64,000 nt of DNA from Penicillus capitatus. Taxonomy: Eukaryota; Plantae; Chlorophyta. The notes beneath the pieces were generated by a model. The model searched no databases and was not told the origin of the DNA. It saw only the letters and a list, made by a program, of their open reading frames with translations. Made by a program: the position numbers and the translations under genes. The stretch spans positions 1 through 64,000 of the forward strand of contig OZ287710.1 of assembly GCA_965649825.1 (NCBI GenBank), written 5' to 3'. Shown in pieces: positions 3,241 to 55,045 of this stretch (the stretch's first letter is position 1; the number at the start of each line of letters is the position of its first letter).

Positions 3241-3352
3241 GGGTTTTGTCGTGACGTACGCTGTGAGGGTTTTGTGGTGACGTTAGTGTAGTTGAACCGT
3301 ATATCTAGCCTATAAATACGGCGGAATGCATGTGTGTTCGTGCATTCTGCCG
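3241..3352 (+). promoter_or_regulatory. Putative promoter of the coiled-coil gene: 17-nt direct repeat, TATA box and hairpin
   Basis: GGGTTTTGTCGTGACGT (3241-3257) and GGGTTTTGTGGTGACGT (3267-3283), 16/17 identical, each ending in TGACGT. TATAAATA at 3311-3318. Inverted repeat 3319-3330/3341-3352. ATG at 3372. Confidence 0.5.
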
Positions 3353-3371: not shown

Positions 3372-6300
3372 ATGGCGCGGCAAGGCGACAGAAGCTCCCG
3401 ACAAGTGCGTTTATTTCCGCCCTTCGCTCGTCGCACGTTGTTTGTGCTCAGGAGGAAGCCTACCATGAATACAACCCAGAGGAGTTCGTGCGCTATCTGC
3501 ACGACAGTCAAACGCAGACCAATACGATCAAAGCTGTGAAAAACTATTTCGATAGGTACGTCGATAGGCTTCCTCTGAACTCGTTTCCATTTTGTGTACT
3601 GTAGATGGCAAACAAATCTCCGCAGGTCCGAGGCGGATCTCCACAGTGCCGTTCAACGCAATGAGGAAGAACGACGACAACTCCGAGAAGACCGTCAGGA
3701 GTTTTTGGCTGAGTAAGTCTCGTGATGCCAAGTTTTGACGCGACGGTTCGAATGCAGGAAGCAGCGCGAACAAGCAGAACGCGAACGACAAGGAGAGGCT
3801 TTCGCAACGTGAGAAGAAACGAAAGAGGGAGTTCATGCGTTAGTTGCGTGCTTCTTAGGAGGACGGCCGAGTTGTCGAAACGCGAAGACGAACTACGACA
3901 AAGAAAGATGCACATCGAAGAGGTCGATCTGCAAAACAAGGAAAAAGCGGAGGATATCGCAGCGGGGTAATGCACCATCTCACACTCATAGTCACATCAC
4001 AGATGTGTGTGTAGTTATCAGCGTTTGAAGGAAGAACGGTTGAAGTACGAGGCTGAGTGTGACCAGTACGACTAATCCCAGACGTGCTTGACCATATATA
4101 TGCATGCGAATGTGTGATGCAGGCGCGATCGGGAGCTGGAGAATGAGACGCAGATCGTCAAGACAGCTCGTGTTGAGCTTGACAGAGAAAGGAATCTTCA
4201 TGCTCAAGACCTGCATGCTTTCCAAGCGGAGTACGTGTATTTATGACGATCTCACTCTTTATGATGCTCTTTTAACAGGAAGCGAGAGTTTGCTGTCACA
4301 CAGAAGTCTTGGCATGAGCAGAAAGAGAAGTGAGAGATGACTAGACCGAATTGATGCTGAAAGGATGTGTGACTGCAGCACGGATCGATTGCTTGCTATG
4401 CGCGAAGAAGAGATTAAACAACGCCTCCTTGTCGTGGATCAACGTGACCAGGAGTGCCATGAACGCGCTCAGCGGGTTGAAGAACGGTAACGATATTCTG
4501 TGTAAAAACAGAAGAGTAAGATTTGTTATCTCTGTCGATCAGTTTTCAAAAGATTCAAAGCGATCAGAAGGATTTCGAGGAGGACTTTGCGGCGTAAGTA
4601 CTAAATCATCATGAATGTGACATCCGTCATCGATTGATTGTGTAAAGGCGCGAGGAAGGACTGAAGAGGCGAGAAGAGCTCTTCCAGAAGGAGGTAGCAG
4701 AAAGAGAAGGCGAGATGCAAACCACAAAGGAGCTGTCGATTAAAAACGCCAAACGGGAAATCGAGCTCCAGAAACAGAAAGCAGACTTTGAACATCAGGA
4801 ACGAACGTAAGCCCGGTGTCTCCTGTCACGATCATTTCATTCGGAAACGCATGTCAGACGGACAGAAGAACTTGCCGAGTGGGAAGAGAAGCTCATGACA
4901 ATGCAGTACGAGGTGTCTCAACGAGAAGACGGTGTGAAAGAGAGAGAAGTTGAGTACGAACGCAAGTAAGACAATCATCTCGCAGGAAGACCGGAGATTA
5001 AGATTGTGCAACAGGGCGTCTAAGTTGCAACAGGAGAGAGATGCATTGCTCGAAGAGCGCAATACATTTCAAGACGAATGCAACGAGAAGATGCGGATGC
5101 TCAATATAAAGGAGCAGAAACTCGAGGAACGTGCGACTCTGCTCGATCAGAATGCGGCAGAACTCAGAGACAATATGGTCGCCATGGACGCAAGAGAGCA
5201 ACAGATTCAGCAACGAGAGACAGCAGTGGTTCAAGTCGAGCAGAGTCGCGAGGAAGAGCGCACAATGCTCGAGAATGCCAAAGCCAATATCGAAGCCCGC
5301 GAGCACAATCTGACGCAGTCGATGCACGATCTGGAGACCGAGAGAGAACGGTAATCGCAGAGGGCATTCGTGGATGTATATGATGTGACGCGTTATGTGC
5401 CATGACAGTGTGCGTGTGTTGGCCGCGGAGACAGAGAGCGAGAAGATCCGCCTGACAGAATGGTCCGAATTTCTGCAACAGCGTTCATCTTCGCTGGATG
5501 AAAAGCAGAAAGTGGTTATGGAGAAGTAAGCGCTGCCATGTGGCTGACCCAATGTAAAGCGTTGTTCTTAGGGAGGAGTTCCTCGTGGAACGTGACCGTG
5601 AGATGGATGTTCGCGAGGAGAATCTGCGAAGCGCAGAAGTTCCGTTCGCGCAGAAGAAAAAGGAATTGGAAAAGCGCGACGAGTTTCTGAGTGAACGCGA
5701 AGAAGATATTTACACGCGAGAGGCAAACTTCTTACAGCGCATGGAGAACGGTGATCAAGAATTGGCAGAAATGAAGAAACAGGCCGAGGCTGATCTCAAA
5801 GAGGCTGCTCGTGTGAGAGAAGAAAGCGAACGAGAGTGAGCATGAATCTTATCGCCAGACGACATTGCATGAAACGTGTGACCTGCAGAAAGGACGAAAC
5901 GCAACGGAAGAGTCAGGTCACCGGGGAAGAACTCAGCCAGTATGTTCCAGTCACATCATTCTTCGATCTAAGATTGTATGTATGTACAGACGCGAGCATG
6001 ATGTGGAGTTCCGAGAAAAGCAGCTGAAAGAGCAAGAAGACGACTTGGCTGTACGGGAAGAACGCTGGAAACAATTCCAGCACTTGATGGATACCGAGCT
6101 TCATCAGACCATCCAATACCGTCGATCAAGTCGCATCGCGGGGGAACAACAGACGAGGCAGGAGCAGTCAACCGTAGCACCTGCAGGATCGGATTTCCAT
6201 GAGGTGGATGACGCAGAAGAGGTCGATCTGCATCACGAGGCGCACCATCAGACTGTCGATCAAGTCCCTCCTCCTAAAAACAGCATTGCGGCTGCCGTGA

Positions 6301-6688
6301 TGCGCAAGAGAAGAATCGGCATGGCTTCACTATCAGAAGATGCTGCTGTCGTTGTTGAAGTGCCTGAAGGGCAGACATCTGACCACCCTGTCCACACTGC
6401 CAAGAAAAGTGTGAAGACGATCGTCTCGTCGACGCGCACCACACAGAAGAAAGCGTTCCATGGATCATCACAGAAGAGGACACAAGAGGAATCTGATTCC
6501 GGAACACCAAAGAAGGTAACCGCGAGGAGGGATCTTCTGATATGACGTTTTCCCCTTTGTACGTTTAGCAAAGAAGATCGGATGCATTACGTGAAGGAGA
6601 AACTGGCGCCGGATGGAACCAGAGACTCCGTCGTCCATCAGTGAGCGGCGAATCAAGCAGCCACAGGACGCAAGACAAGAATGCCTAG
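3372..6688 (+). CDS. Long coiled-coil protein (~817 aa, 18 exons): short head, E/R/K/Q-rich rod, low-complexity basic tail
   Basis: All 17 GT-AG introns remove in frame. Exons: 3372-3404, 3452-3555, 3605-3712, 3758-3808, 3859-3966, 4015-4065, 4123-4230, 4279-4329, 4379-4486, 4543-4593, 4648-4806, 4858-4965, 5015-5350, 5409-5525, 5572-5835, 5889-5939, 5990-6515, 6569-6688 (2454 nt, ends TAG). Confidence 0.8.
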
Positions 6689-7179
6689 TGTTGCAAGAAT
6701 CGCGTGCATGTTGTAGATGCACGTGATACTCTTAATTAAAGAAACAGAACTGTGGGATGAACTATTAGATGAATGATCATTTTAAAAGTGTTTTGGCAAC
6801 TGCGGTATCTGTTATTGTAAATCCGCACGAAATAGAGTACCTGTCTCGTGAAGCGTTACATGAGACGATGTCTGCGCGACGTTTCAAAAGGCTCTCGAAT
6901 TGGCCTATCCCAATTCGTCATCTTTGGTGTAGCATCGAGTGTGGTCATCGTCCCAATGGGACCCACAGATACCTTGTCTAATCACATGTCGTGTTTCAAG
7001 CAGCATGCATGGCCTTCTTCATCTAGACGTCGCGTCAGATACGGATGATCTTTTGCTCGCTCCTTTTGGTGGACAAACATTGATGTGACGGATAGCATTC
7101 TCCTTTGCTGTTGCTACTGAAATTTCTCACCGTTTTGAAACGCATGGCTGACATTGTGAATGTTAGAATGTGCATGGGT

Positions 7180-7184
7180 TTACA
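7180..7184 (-). terminator. TGTAA (UGUAA) polyadenylation signal after RPT4
   Basis: TGTAA lies a few nt downstream of the RPT4 TAA. The same motif follows NOG1-like (59052-59056) and Derlin (57367-57371). UGUAA is the known chlorophyte poly(A) signal. Confidence 0.5.
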
Positions 7185-7190
7185 TTTTAG

Positions 7191-8384
7191 TTATTTCTTT
7201 CCGCCGTCTCCCCAAGAGGTATCGTAAGTGATAGTGGATTCCAGTTTTTTCGTGTCGTTCAGTTTGCGAACGGCCTTCATGAAATCCTCATGCACAGCAT
7301 AGTCTCGTTCATCTCGGATGGCATACATGCCAGCTTCGGTGCAGACATTACGTAGATCAGCTCCGTTAAAATTCTCGGCCAGCTTCACGACAGCTTCGTA
7401 ATCGATGTCCCCGTGTTTGCTCAGCGGCGCAGCATGGATCTTCAGAATCTCCATTCTGGCCTGTTCATTGGGCAACGGTATCTCGATTTTGCGATCCAGT
7501 CGTCCAGGACGCATCAGTGCAGGGTCCAATACATCGGGTCGATTGGTGGCCATGATCATCTTCACTTTACCCATCTTCTCAAATCCATCCAACTGACTCA
7601 GCAACTCCATCAACGTTCTCTGAATCTCACGATCCGCCGATGTCCCTTCGCTAAAACGCCGTCCGCCGATCGCATCGATCTCATCCATGAAGATGATGCA
7701 CGGTTCATGCTCTCGTGCATACTCAAACATCTCGCGTATAATTCTGGCACTCTCGCCAATGTACTTGTCCACGATGGCACTGGAAACGACTTTGAGGAAA
7801 TTCGCATCGATGTTGCTTGCGATAGCTCTGGCCAACAAGGTCTTGCCTGTTCCGGGCGGACCGTACAGCAAGACGCCTTTTGGCGGATTGATTCCGACAC
7901 GGAGAAAGAGCTCAGGATTCAGCAAAGGCAATTCCACGCTCTCCCTCAATTCCCGAATCTGATCGGAGAGGCCACCGATGGATGAGTAATCGACGTGACC
8001 CGGGTCTTCCGTCAACATGTTGAAGACGACGGGATCGACTTCGCGTGGGAGACAACGCATGATGGTGAGTGTCGTCATATCGAGAGCCACACGGGCACCA
8101 GATACGAGCTTCAGTTTGTCAAGCTTGCTGCGGACACCGACAACATAACGTGGTCCCGAACTGGCCTTAACGATGTAGCGTTCTTCGTCGAGTTGACGTA
8201 GTACTTCGCCAATAATCTGACCCACACTCTGTAGCGCCTTGAGCTCATCTTCGGATTTATCAAACTCGCGCTGGAGGTCGCGAATCTCGAGGCGCTGTTT
8301 GCGAACGCGCGTGTCGATCTCTTTGTGCTTGACAAGACGCTGACGATACTCAACCAGTGCTTGCTGTTTCTCGTTGTCGTCCAT
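7191..8384 (-). CDS. RPT4: 26S proteasome AAA-ATPase subunit Rpt4 (intronless)
   Basis: MDDNEKQQ start (ATG 8384). [35 protein letters not shown], Walker A GPPGTGKT, Walker [32 protein letters not shown]. Confidence 0.97.
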
Positions 8385-8512
8385 GACGCTTTGGATTCGA
8401 TGTACGACAACTGGAGGCAAAATGCGACCCTCAATGTGCGTGACGAGGGTTTTGAACACAGAAAAGATCTCTCAAAAGCAAAAGTGTTTGTGGAGATGAA
8501 GAGGGTATGCGT

Positions 8513-53127: not shown

Positions 53128-53212
53128 ATTCGAGTGAAACTTCAGCGGTGTGCTTTCATTTCACAATGCAATTCGCAACGGTGCGCGCACCGTTCATATT
53201 GTCGATCCAAAC

Positions 53213-55045
53213 ATGCCCATCGTCAGTGTCGGCCGAGACAAACTCTTTGCGGCGCTGGGCGAGACGTTCACCGACGATGCGTTCCAGGACCTTTGTTTTG
53301 AGTACGGGATCGAACTGGATGACGTCACGTCAGAAAAGGAGATGGCACGCAAGGAACTGAACCTCAAAGATGGCGATGCCATTTCCAGCGTTGAAGCCAG
53401 CGAAGAAGTGATCTACAAGATCGACATCCCAGCCAACCGCTATGACATGCTTTGTCTGGAAGGCATTGCCCGTGCCTTGAACATTTTCAAAGAAAAGGCG
53501 GTCCATGTGCATTATGATGTGACGTCGATGAGCGAGGGGGTGCAGCAGATGGTGGTGCATCCACAGGTGGCACTTGTACGTCCCTTTGTCGTCTGTGCCA
53601 TTCTGAGGGGTATTCAATTCGACCAGCAGCGCTACAACAGTTTCATCGATCTTCAAGACAAGTTACACCAAAACCTATGTCGTCATCGAACCCTCGTGGC
53701 GATCGGAACGCACGATCTGGATGCCATTCAAGGGCCCTTCAGTTACGAAGCGCTACCGCCTGAAGAGATCGAATTCGTGCCGTTGAAACAGACTACAAGC
53801 TTCAAGGCAGGAGATTTGCTGCAATACTATGTAGAGAACGACAAGAAGCTGGGAAAGTATGTGCCGATCATTCAGGACAGCCTGGTGTATCCCGTCATCT
53901 ATGATGCCAATCGAACGGTGCTCTCGTTGCCTCCCATTATCAACGGTGCCCATTCGGCCATTTCGCTCGACACTAAGAATGTCTTCATCGAGTGCACGGC
54001 CACAGATATCACCAAAGCCAACATTGTTCTCAATACCGTCTGCTGTATGTTTTCTGAGTACTGCTCCACACCGTTCGAAGTGGAGCCCGTCGAGGTGACG
54101 GATGTGACGGGCAAGAAGCATATCTACCCAGATCTGAGCTACCGTGCCATGGACGTGTCAGCGGCGTACATCAACAGGACGATTGGCGTCGACCTCTCTG
54201 TCCAAGACATCGTCCAGTACTTAGAGAGAATGACCCTTGAGGCCGTCGGCAATGAAGATGGGACCATCCGTATCAAGATTCCGCCGACCAGGAGTGACAT
54301 CTTGCATCCTTGTGATGTCATGGAGGACGTAGCCATTGCCTATGGATTCAACAACATTGCTGAGACAGTGCCCACGACGGCAACACAGGGCAGGGAGCTT
54401 CCCCTGAACCAGCTGACAGAACTCATCCGTTTGGAATGCGCCATGGCTGGCTACACTGAGATTTTGACCTGGAGTCTCTGTTCCCACGCCGATAACTTCG
54501 AACGACTGCTGAGAATCGACGATGGTACGACAGCCGTCTGCATCGGCAATCCCGCCACGGCCGAATTCGAAGTCTGTCGCACGTCTCTTCTCCCCGGCGC
54601 TCTCAAAACACTCGGTGCCAGTGGCAACGTCCCAAAGCCGATTAAACTCTTCGAGATCTCAGACGTGGTGCTGCTGAGCGATGAAAAGTCCGTCGGTGCC
54701 AAAAACGAACGCCGCCTCGTGGCCGTGCACTGCAACAAAGATTCAGGATTCGAAGTGATCCATGGACTGCTCAATCGATTAATGGATATCATGGACATTC
54801 CCCTGAGTCCAGAGCAGAATGCTGGAGGCCTCTCTTATGCCTGGAAAGCGGAGGATCATTCCACATTCTTCCCAGGAAGACATGCCACGGTGCATCTGTG
54901 CGAGAAGCCCGTTGGCGAATTCGGTGTTGTCCATCCAGATGTACTGGGTCAATTCGGAATCGATTATCCAGTGTCGGCCGTCGAACTCAATCTCCATCCA
55001 TTCTGTTTCGATCAATTCCACAAACCATTCGAGACTCGGCTCTGA
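53213..55045 (+). CDS. FARSB: Cytosolic phenylalanyl-tRNA synthetase beta subunit (intronless)
   Basis: MPIVSVGRDKLF...FEYGIELD, YKIDIPANRYDMLCLEG, FIDLQDKLHQN, PPTRSDILHPCDVMEDVAIAYGFN, GEFGVVHPDVL. Confidence 0.97.
   Translation: MPIVSVGRDKLFAALGETFTDDAFQDLCFEYGIELDDVTSEKEMARKELNLKDGDAISSVEASEEVIYKIDIPANRYDMLCLEGIARALNIFKEKAVHVHYDVTSMSEGVQQMVVHPQVALVRPFVVCAILRGIQFDQQRYNSFIDLQDKLHQNLCRHRTLVAIGTHDLDAIQGPFSYEALPPEEIEFVPLKQTTSFKAGDLLQYYVENDKKLGKYVPIIQDSLVYPVIYDANRTVLSLPPIINGAHSAISLDTKNVFIECTATDITKANIVLNTVCCMFSEYCSTPFEVEPVEVTDVTGKKHIYPDLSYRAMDVSAAYINRTIGVDLSVQDIVQYLERMTLEAVGNEDGTIRIKIPPTRSDILHPCDVMEDVAIAYGFNNIAETVPTTATQGRELPLNQLTELIRLECAMAGYTEILTWSLCSHADNFERLLRIDDGTTAVCIGNPATAEFEVCRTSLLPGALKTLGASGNVPKPIKLFEISDVVLLSDEKSVGAKNERRLVAVHCNKDSGFEVIHGLLNRLMDIMDIPLSPEQNAGGLSYAWKAEDHSTFFPGRHATVHLCEKPVGEFGVVHPDVLGQFGIDYPVSAVELNLHPFCFDQFHKPFETRL

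Follow-up and report, generated by a model that had tools for sequence, protein, structure and literature searches.

The window analysed here is the 64,000-nucleotide stretch at positions 1 to 64,000 (forward strand) of contig OZ287710.1 in the assembly GCA_965649825.1 of the green alga Penicillus capitatus, with a GC content near 50%. It also matches a metagenome-assembled contig of 493,524 bp in ENA (ERZ25074695 ctg340356). Close to its start lies a gene for a coiled-coil protein, rebuilt here from the window sequence, which runs on the + strand from an ATG at 3372 to a TAG stop at 6686–6688 and is divided into 18 exons that together form an open reading frame (ORF) of 817 residues (97 kDa, pI 5.21). 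The protein opens with a head of 45 residues, continues in a helical rod about 600 residues long (approximately residues 46–645) and ends in a basic tail of about 170 residues (Table 1).

Exon lengths, intron phases and their conservation

Exons 1 and 2 (33 and 104 nt, respectively) are separated by a phase-0 intron, and downstream of intron 2 the exon lengths are 108, 51, 108, 51, 108, 51, 108, 51, 159, 108, 336, 117, 264 and 51 nt, before exons 17 and 18 finish the reading frame. The introns flanking these exons are all of the GT..AG type and 45–58 nt long. Introns 2–16, from the first base of intron 2 at 3556 to the last base of intron 16 at 5989, are all in phase 2, and intron 17 is in phase 0. 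An initial annotation, made from the sequence alone, had listed the same 14 lengths and the same run of phase-2 introns; our rebuild recovered both, and the lengths are identical in the orthologue described below. An arrangement of eight successive exons that alternate between two exact lengths cannot be chance.

The donor sites (GTAAG, GTGAG, GTACG and GTAAT) are good and the acceptors are mostly YAG, with two AAG. Retention of any intron leads to a stop, mostly within a few codons of the junction, and for 11 of the 15 introns in phase 2 it is the GTAA or GTGA of the donor that supplies an in-frame TAA or TGA immediately behind the split codon. Phase 2 together with such an intron start thus means that a retained intron ends translation, providing a built-in safeguard. 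A minimal-intron model obtained by dynamic programming was discarded, as it followed an implausible path of 10 introns, and a model consistent with the donor and acceptor signals was used instead.

Searching with the translation of exon 17 returned the window's own ORF and one relative with 67% identity, which identified an orthologous locus (L001, ENA ERZ26696514) in a sister alga, and this was compared with the window by global alignment. The two loci are syntenic, with Rpt4-like and P450 genes downstream in both (an HSP70 gene is found upstream in L001), and share an overall nucleotide identity of 72.7%. The initial annotation had proposed a comparison of intron positions in orthologues. 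Every GT and AG is conserved and exons 2–16 have identical lengths with zero gaps, while intron length differs in 12 of the 15 introns between them. No indel separates the two species across 1,779 nt of rod exons, even though protein identity over exons 2–16 is 63%, a divergence of 37%. Exonic substitutions fall at the three codon positions in the numbers 128, 107 and 216, an excess at the third. The orthologous copy of exon 2 is equal in length (79% nucleotide identity), the 159-nt exon 11 is present in the same form, and the equivalent of exon 18 is spliced in the orthologue and encodes the same RRSDALREGETGAGWNQRLR block. Taken together, the comparison gives strong support to the predicted junctions and to putative purifying selection on length.

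It could be argued that the exon pattern is an artefact of a gene model in which GT/AG pairs were chosen to fit, given that nothing but the sequence went into the first version of the model and that some introns offer alternative GT..AG pairs. However, lengths, splice sites and a gap-free frame have all been kept at 73% nucleotide identity with indels confined to the proposed introns, the exons display a codon-position bias, and every intron contains an in-frame stop. We therefore regard an artefact as extremely improbable.

Table 1. Coordinates of the coiled-coil gene and of other features in the window.
Feature	Position	Strand	Description
Direct repeat GGGTTTTGT(C/G)GTGACGT, two copies	3241–3283	+	period 26, ACGT core, about 90 nt 5' of the ATG
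Exon 1, intron 1, exon 2	3372–3404, 3405–3451, 3452–3555	+	intron 1 in phase 0; 45-residue head with the conserved EYNPEEF...TNTIKAVKNYFD block
Intron 2	3556–3604	+	opens the run of 15 phase-2 introns
Unit 1	3605–3808	+	exon 3 (3605–3712, 108 nt), intron 3, exon 4 (3758–3808, 51 nt); residues 46–98
Unit 2	3859–4065	+	exon 5 (3859–3966, 108 nt), intron 5, exon 6 (4015–4065, 51 nt); residues 99–151
Unit 3	4123–4329	+	exon 7 (4123–4230, 108 nt), intron 7, exon 8 (4279–4329, 51 nt); residues 152–204
Unit 4	4379–4593	+	exon 9 (4379–4486, 108 nt), intron 9, exon 10 (4543–4593, 51 nt); residues 205–257
Unit 5	4648–4806	+	exon 11 (159 nt = 108 + 51 without the inner intron); residues 258–310
Unit 6	4858–5065	+	exon 12 (4858–4965, 108 nt), intron 12, leading 51 nt of exon 13 (5015–5350, 336 nt); residues 311–363
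TFQDECNEKMRML	5066–5104	+	residues 364–376
Irregular C-terminal rod	5066–5939	+	remainder of exon 13 (to 5350), exons 14 (5409–5525, 117 nt), 15 (5572–5835, 264 nt) and 16 (5889–5939, 51 nt); introns 13–16 in phase 2
Exon 17	5990–6515	+	end of the rod (near residue 645) plus the greater part of the basic tail, which has no predicted fold
Exon 18	6569–6688	+	conserved C-terminal block RRSDALREGETGAGWNQRLR, then the TAG stop; preceded by phase-0 intron 17 (6516–6568)
Rpt4-like proteasome ATPase	7191–8459	-	397 amino acids, uninterrupted ORF
PheRS-beta	53150–55045	+	610 amino acids, uninterrupted ORF

Periodicity of the encoded rod

The six units in Table 1, each of 53 residues, cover the first 318 residues of the rod (46–363). 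Autocorrelation of the protein with BLOSUM62 was carried out for both orthologues and compared with shuffles, for which the 95th-percentile maximum was about 3.4. Over residues 46–363 the top lags are 53 and 106, with z values of 5.1 (lag 53) and 6.1 (lag 106) for the window and of 6.0 and 5.2, respectively, for the orthologue, while the top lags over residues 364–650 (56, 105, 35 and 42) are plain multiples of the heptad. Fourier analysis of the hydrophobic residues (LIVMFYW) gave a corresponding result, in line with the period-53 signal that the initial annotation had suggested looking for by this means: the peak over residues 46–363 lies at 3.532 residues in the window and 3.530 in the orthologue, compared with 53/15 = 3.533. 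The power at 3.533 is 19.4 and 25.9 in the window and the orthologue, respectively, against 0.4 and 1.9 at 3.500. Over residues 364–640 the peak lies at 3.512 and 3.508, and the power at 3.533 (7.4 and 6.8) is below that at 3.500 (12.5 and 18.7).

Stacking the six units of the two species in 12 rows revealed the positions that carry this signal. Columns 6 and 13 are hydrophobic in all 12 rows, columns 34, 41 and 48 in 10, column 20 in 8 and column 27 in only 4, and from column 48 to column 6 of the next unit there is a step of 11 residues, giving a core spacing of 7, 7, 7, 7, 7, 7 and 11. Each unit is thus composed of six heptads and one hendecad, which extends across the boundary between units. 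When the register is assigned in both sequences by a simple Viterbi procedure, units 1–4 and unit 6 begin in one and the same register, each unit holding four extra residues, and basic residues recur every 7.5 residues, near 53/7, rather than every 7.0. The composition of 6 × 7 + 11 residues with 3.53 residues per turn, proposed in the initial annotation for the rod at large, therefore holds for the six units at residues 46–363 and fails for the rest of the rod, which is built of plain heptads.

The rod has a pI of 5.0, 46% charged residues (E 21%, R 12% and K 7%) and 22% LIVMFYW, as well as one conserved proline, P522, which is likely to be a linker. The high charge, together with the mostly polar d-type columns of the unit stack, is what would be expected if the rod, or its N-terminal half, were a charged single alpha-helix (SAH) spacer of the ER/K type, in which a 53-residue period would have no meaning for packing. 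Such helices are charged without a hydrophobic seam, however, and the rod does not conform to this description: its LIVMFYW residues are concentrated in a sharp seam of 3.53 residues with a power 19–26 times the random expectation, its a-type columns are hydrophobic in 8–12 of the 12 rows (4 of 12 in column 27), and SAH domains have no seam of this kind. A SAH spacer is accordingly an improbable description of this protein, and a coiled coil with a hydrophobic core is the reading followed below.

Coiled-coil rods whose heptads are broken at fixed long intervals, and whose length is strongly conserved, are familiar from myosin II and paramyosin. These rods are organised in 28-residue zones, and in myosin one-residue skips occur every 196–197 residues or so; we know of no correspondence between these skips and exons. 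The algal rod differs in that a four-residue stutter, i.e. a hendecad, recurs every 53 residues and coincides with the boundaries of exon pairs. Periodicities of 3.5 and 3.63 residues per turn and the occurrence of hendecads have been described for coiled coils (PMC9858780), and the bacterial Scy and FilP rods are likewise coiled-coil scaffolds that mix heptads and hendecads, which alters supercoiling (PMC9858780). Unlike these bacterial proteins, which are dominated by hendecads with an Ala-rich core, the present rod is eukaryotic, combines six heptads with one hendecad and is split by introns. A periodicity of 53/15 would give a left-handed supercoil with a twist lower by about a quarter, and a pitch longer by about one third, compared with a pure heptad coil. 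Length-tuned isoforms produced by exon skipping, an idea of the initial annotation, would in such a rod have to omit a whole pair of 53 codons, as the coiled coil would be thrown out of register if just one exon of 36 or 17 codons were skipped.

Origin of the exon pattern

The closest likeness to this gene structure is found in fibrillar collagen genes, in which the repeat is legible in the exon sizes, the introns share a single phase and fused exons have the summed size of two units. Fibrillar collagen exons form a series of 54 and 108 bp, encode Gly-X-Y triplets and are separated by phase-0 introns. Exact recurring exon sizes with a shared phase are also present in the algal gene, as evidenced by four 108/51 pairs, the fused 159-nt exon and the 108-nt exon followed by the leading 51 nt of exon 13. 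The algal gene differs from collagen genes in its two alternating sizes, its phase-2 introns and its coiled-coil super-repeat of 53 residues, and no homology is implied. Both an exon-periodic architecture and a regularly interrupted coiled coil are thus known kinds, of which a version with a 53-residue coiled-coil repeat was not found in a literature search that included the term "53-residue repeat" and returned nothing relevant.

Several of the units open with the loose motif x-R-x-x-E-L-x-x-R-E-x-E-L, and little else of a common sequence is left in them. In-register nucleotide identity of the 51-nt exons, like that of the 108-nt exons given below, is at background, which agrees with the initial annotation that had noticed no obvious nucleotide identity among the exons, and the introns do not resemble one another when compared. 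Since residue similarity between the units is marginal and nucleotide identity is at background, the case for their common descent is made by gene structure and pattern and not by sequence.

The most economical origin for such a pattern is an ancient tandem duplication. In this scenario, a genomic segment of about 260 bp, consisting of two exons and two introns, would have been repeatedly duplicated in tandem, copying the position and phase of the introns along with the coding unit. The later loss of one intron would have produced the 159-nt exon 11; that this exon, being 108 + 51 nt long, has lost an intron was already proposed in the initial annotation, and the same fused exon in the orthologue agrees with it. 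Further intron losses and small in-frame changes would have shaped the C-terminal half of the rod (336, 117 and 264 nt), in which the 51-nt exon 16 would be a survivor. The copies would then have diverged until the coiled-coil pattern alone was left, with the exact unit length held by selection on the coiled-coil register. Tandem duplication had also been favoured in the initial annotation; exon lengths and phase fit it, and the similarity of residues from unit to unit adds little, being marginal. As only two close species were compared, the duplication history is something that we infer.

Could the introns have come after the repeat? It is conceivable that a periodic coiled coil existed first and that each unit later gained its introns separately, at positions made equivalent by an insertion mechanism with a bias for sequence or structure, since the units retain no nucleotide or intron similarity that would prove co-duplication and bursts of intron gain are known in some green algae. 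This would require at least 10 independent insertions at two exact codon positions and in one phase. Furthermore, no insertion motif is common to the exon bases on either side of the junctions, the introns are mutually dissimilar and, at 45–58 nt, too short for introner-like elements; an introner-type origin was rejected on the grounds that the introns are not alike. The neighbouring genes are intron-poor as well: the Rpt4-like and PheRS-beta genes in Table 1 are uninterrupted, compared with 17 introns in the 2.45-kb coding sequence of the coiled-coil gene. Intron density is therefore very uneven in this genome, and copying accounts for the 17 introns better than a general richness in introns would. 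Later insertion into a pre-existing repeat appears quite unlikely, and we retain duplication of the segment as the preferred origin.

Combining the gene structure, the orthologue comparison and the periodicity analysis, we read the locus as a conserved 18-exon gene that encodes a structural or scaffold protein, whose rod contains six 53-residue units, each encoded by an exon pair, that arose by segment duplication. We assign this joint reading a probability of about 0.72. Several observations weigh against it. The junction coordinates are predictions supported by the comparison with the orthologue and not by transcripts. Within the unit stack the d positions are weakly hydrophobic and mostly polar, and the C-terminal half of the rod (residues 364–640) consists of ordinary heptads (3.51) off the 53-residue grid. 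A leave-one-out hidden Markov model (HMM), scored on tandemised held-out units versus shuffles, recovered one of the six held-out units in register above all shuffles, and others were aligned with a shift of whole heptads. The 108-nt exons are 35% identical in register, which is at background compared with 27–34% in shifted controls. With regard to function, no Pfam family was found at E ≤ 1, and a search of PDB sequences gave one weak and probably chance match to a superantigen-like protein (3v05_A, E = 0.023). In addition, a phmmer search of exon 13 against 1.84 billion representative proteins returned the sister-species ORF alone, and scans of JGI metagenomes with head patterns and with exon-13 patterns yielded no relatives.

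Protein relatives and the nuclear-scaffold question

When the complete spliced protein was compared with 5.8 billion proteins, no match came up among the best 8000 candidates, which were probably filled by coiled-coil words, and no paralogue of the gene is present in the window or in the orthologous locus. Prokaryote-style gene calls over the coiled-coil gene include several antisense ORFs, at 6768–7886 (-) of L001 and at 3559–4810 (-) of L003, which are artefacts of its GAR-rich coding strand. Gene calls of this sort split the coiled-coil gene into pieces, so that the spliced protein is absent from protein collections. A 20.7-kb region containing the orthologue is found on two large contigs of the sister alga (L001 and L002; 959 kb and 2.24 Mb) with 99.4% identity, representing either haplotypes or a very recent large duplication.

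The rate of evolution may also have hidden more distant relatives. PheRS-beta, for which an exact look-up gave no match, shares 95% identity with an unnamed ENA protein encoded on a 2.2-Mb contig, 75% with that of Caulerpa lentillifera, 70% with that of Bryopsis sp. KO-2023 and 61–66% with those of Ulva and Chlorella. Its nearest matches are thus from green algae, which marks the host as an ulvophyte of Bryopsidales type. Compared with 95% for PheRS-beta between the same two species, the 63% identity of the coiled-coil protein indicates fast evolution, and distant orthologues may be undetectable. Between the two species, no part of the rod is invariant over a greater length than TFQDECNEKMRML, which lies directly after unit 6 and may be a functional landmark, e.g. 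an assembly or binding site. Upstream of the gene, the region is 77% identical to that of the orthologue, which has one copy of the GGGTTTTGT(C/G)GTGACGT element; this conserved element has therefore been duplicated in the window over a length of 26 bp. Scanning the window for Rfam families and for tRNAs returned nothing.

Judged from its sequence features, the protein most likely has a structural role in forming filaments or a scaffold. The tail has a pI of 8.3 and carries RKRR at 708, a single TPKK at 775 and PKKQRR at 776, and these basic clusters, together with TPKK, suggest that the protein is possibly located in the nucleus. AlphaFold2 models of the tails of both species contain the helix of the rod end and one short helix and are otherwise unfolded. 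The best-conserved block of the tail, RRSDALREGETGAGWNQRLR, is encoded by exon 18 (residues 779–817) just after TPKK, and the C-termini of the two orthologues read ...TQDKNA and ...SSSQRT.

A nuclear-scaffold role of the NMCP or lamin kind is a weak lead and a low-probability guess. Similar to the NMCP/CRWN proteins, the algal protein combines a short head, a long acidic coiled-coil rod and a disordered basic tail with a putative nuclear localisation signal (NLS) in more than 800 residues of pI 4–6 and diverges fast (PMC11604088, PMC6506774). It differs from them in that the MGLL block is absent and that head and tail motifs are not significant, and these two papers describe no 53-residue exon module for NMCPs. 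One possible explanation is that the gene belongs to the NMCP/CRWN family but has diverged strongly from its other members, in which case the regular units would be an elaboration of the rod specific to this lineage. In line with this, a precomputed, weak match to CRWN_N (PF27881) exists for the 129-residue ORF of exon 13 in the orthologue, the region in which TFQDECNEKMRML falls; a length above 800 residues, a pI between 4 and 6 and a tripartite layout with disordered termini, as set out for the family (PMC11604088), are all found here; the tail contains NLS-like clusters and TPKK; and NMCPs are extremely divergent (PMC11604088). The CRWN_N match, however, is confined to the orthologue and was not obtained with a local copy of Pfam, the corresponding and shorter ORF of the window has no Pfam match on record, and coiled-coil families readily cross-match. 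In the phmmer search with exon 13 no streptophyte protein was found among the 1.84 billion proteins. Neither orthologue contains MGLL or even MG[LIVM][LIVM], and head motif 11 and tail motifs 5, 14 (RYNLRR) and 4 (PMC6506774) score no better than region-wise shuffles (p = 0.39–0.99). Thus NLRRS (residues 50–54) and WNQRLRRP (794–801) are only resemblances to NMCP motifs, and the superficial likeness of RRSDALREGETGAGWNQRLR to the NLS-linked RYNLRR motif of NMCPs is not significant in the shuffle tests. Chlorophytes are stated to lack NMCPs (PMC11604088, PMC6506774), whose origin has been placed after the split from Chlorophyta (PMC6506774). The protein was consequently not filed as an NMCP, given the missing MGLL block, the motifs at shuffle level and the CRWN_N match that was not reproduced, and membership of the family seems doubtful.

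Lamins and other intermediate filament (IF) proteins offer a further comparison, as they too are tripartite rod proteins in which the coiled coil has a stutter, and they likewise carry an NLS-like cluster and, adjacent to rod or tail, a CDK-type site. In contrast to them, the algal protein has no match to PF00038 (Filament), no Ig-fold tail domain, there being no strands in the AlphaFold2 model of the tail, and no CaaX box. It is tempting to speculate that the gene encodes the first chlorophyte rod protein of the nuclear-lamina type, found in a siphonous, multinucleate alga of the Bryopsidales as either a very diverged relative of NMCP/CRWN or an independent analogue, and that the axial stagger in its filament lattice would be dictated by the 53-residue repeat (about 7.9 nm), although we consider this a long shot.

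As an orphan outside its orthologue in the sister species, the protein is of modest immediate impact. It nevertheless provides a clean example of a repeat that has faded from the sequence and has been kept in exon sizes, intron phase and coiled-coil register, and is usable as a test case for methods of repeat detection and gene-structure analysis. A strict repeat of 15 turns in 53 residues, kept without an indel between the two species, points to a rod whose length is critical, and the coiled-coil field could use it to study the influence of regularly inserted hendecads on supercoiling and assembly. If the nuclear-scaffold lead were true, the protein would bear on how the nuclear envelope is supported in green algae, which have been reported to be without lamins and NMCPs, and either the origin of the plant-type lamina would precede the split between chlorophytes and streptophytes or a lamina would have been invented independently for a third time.

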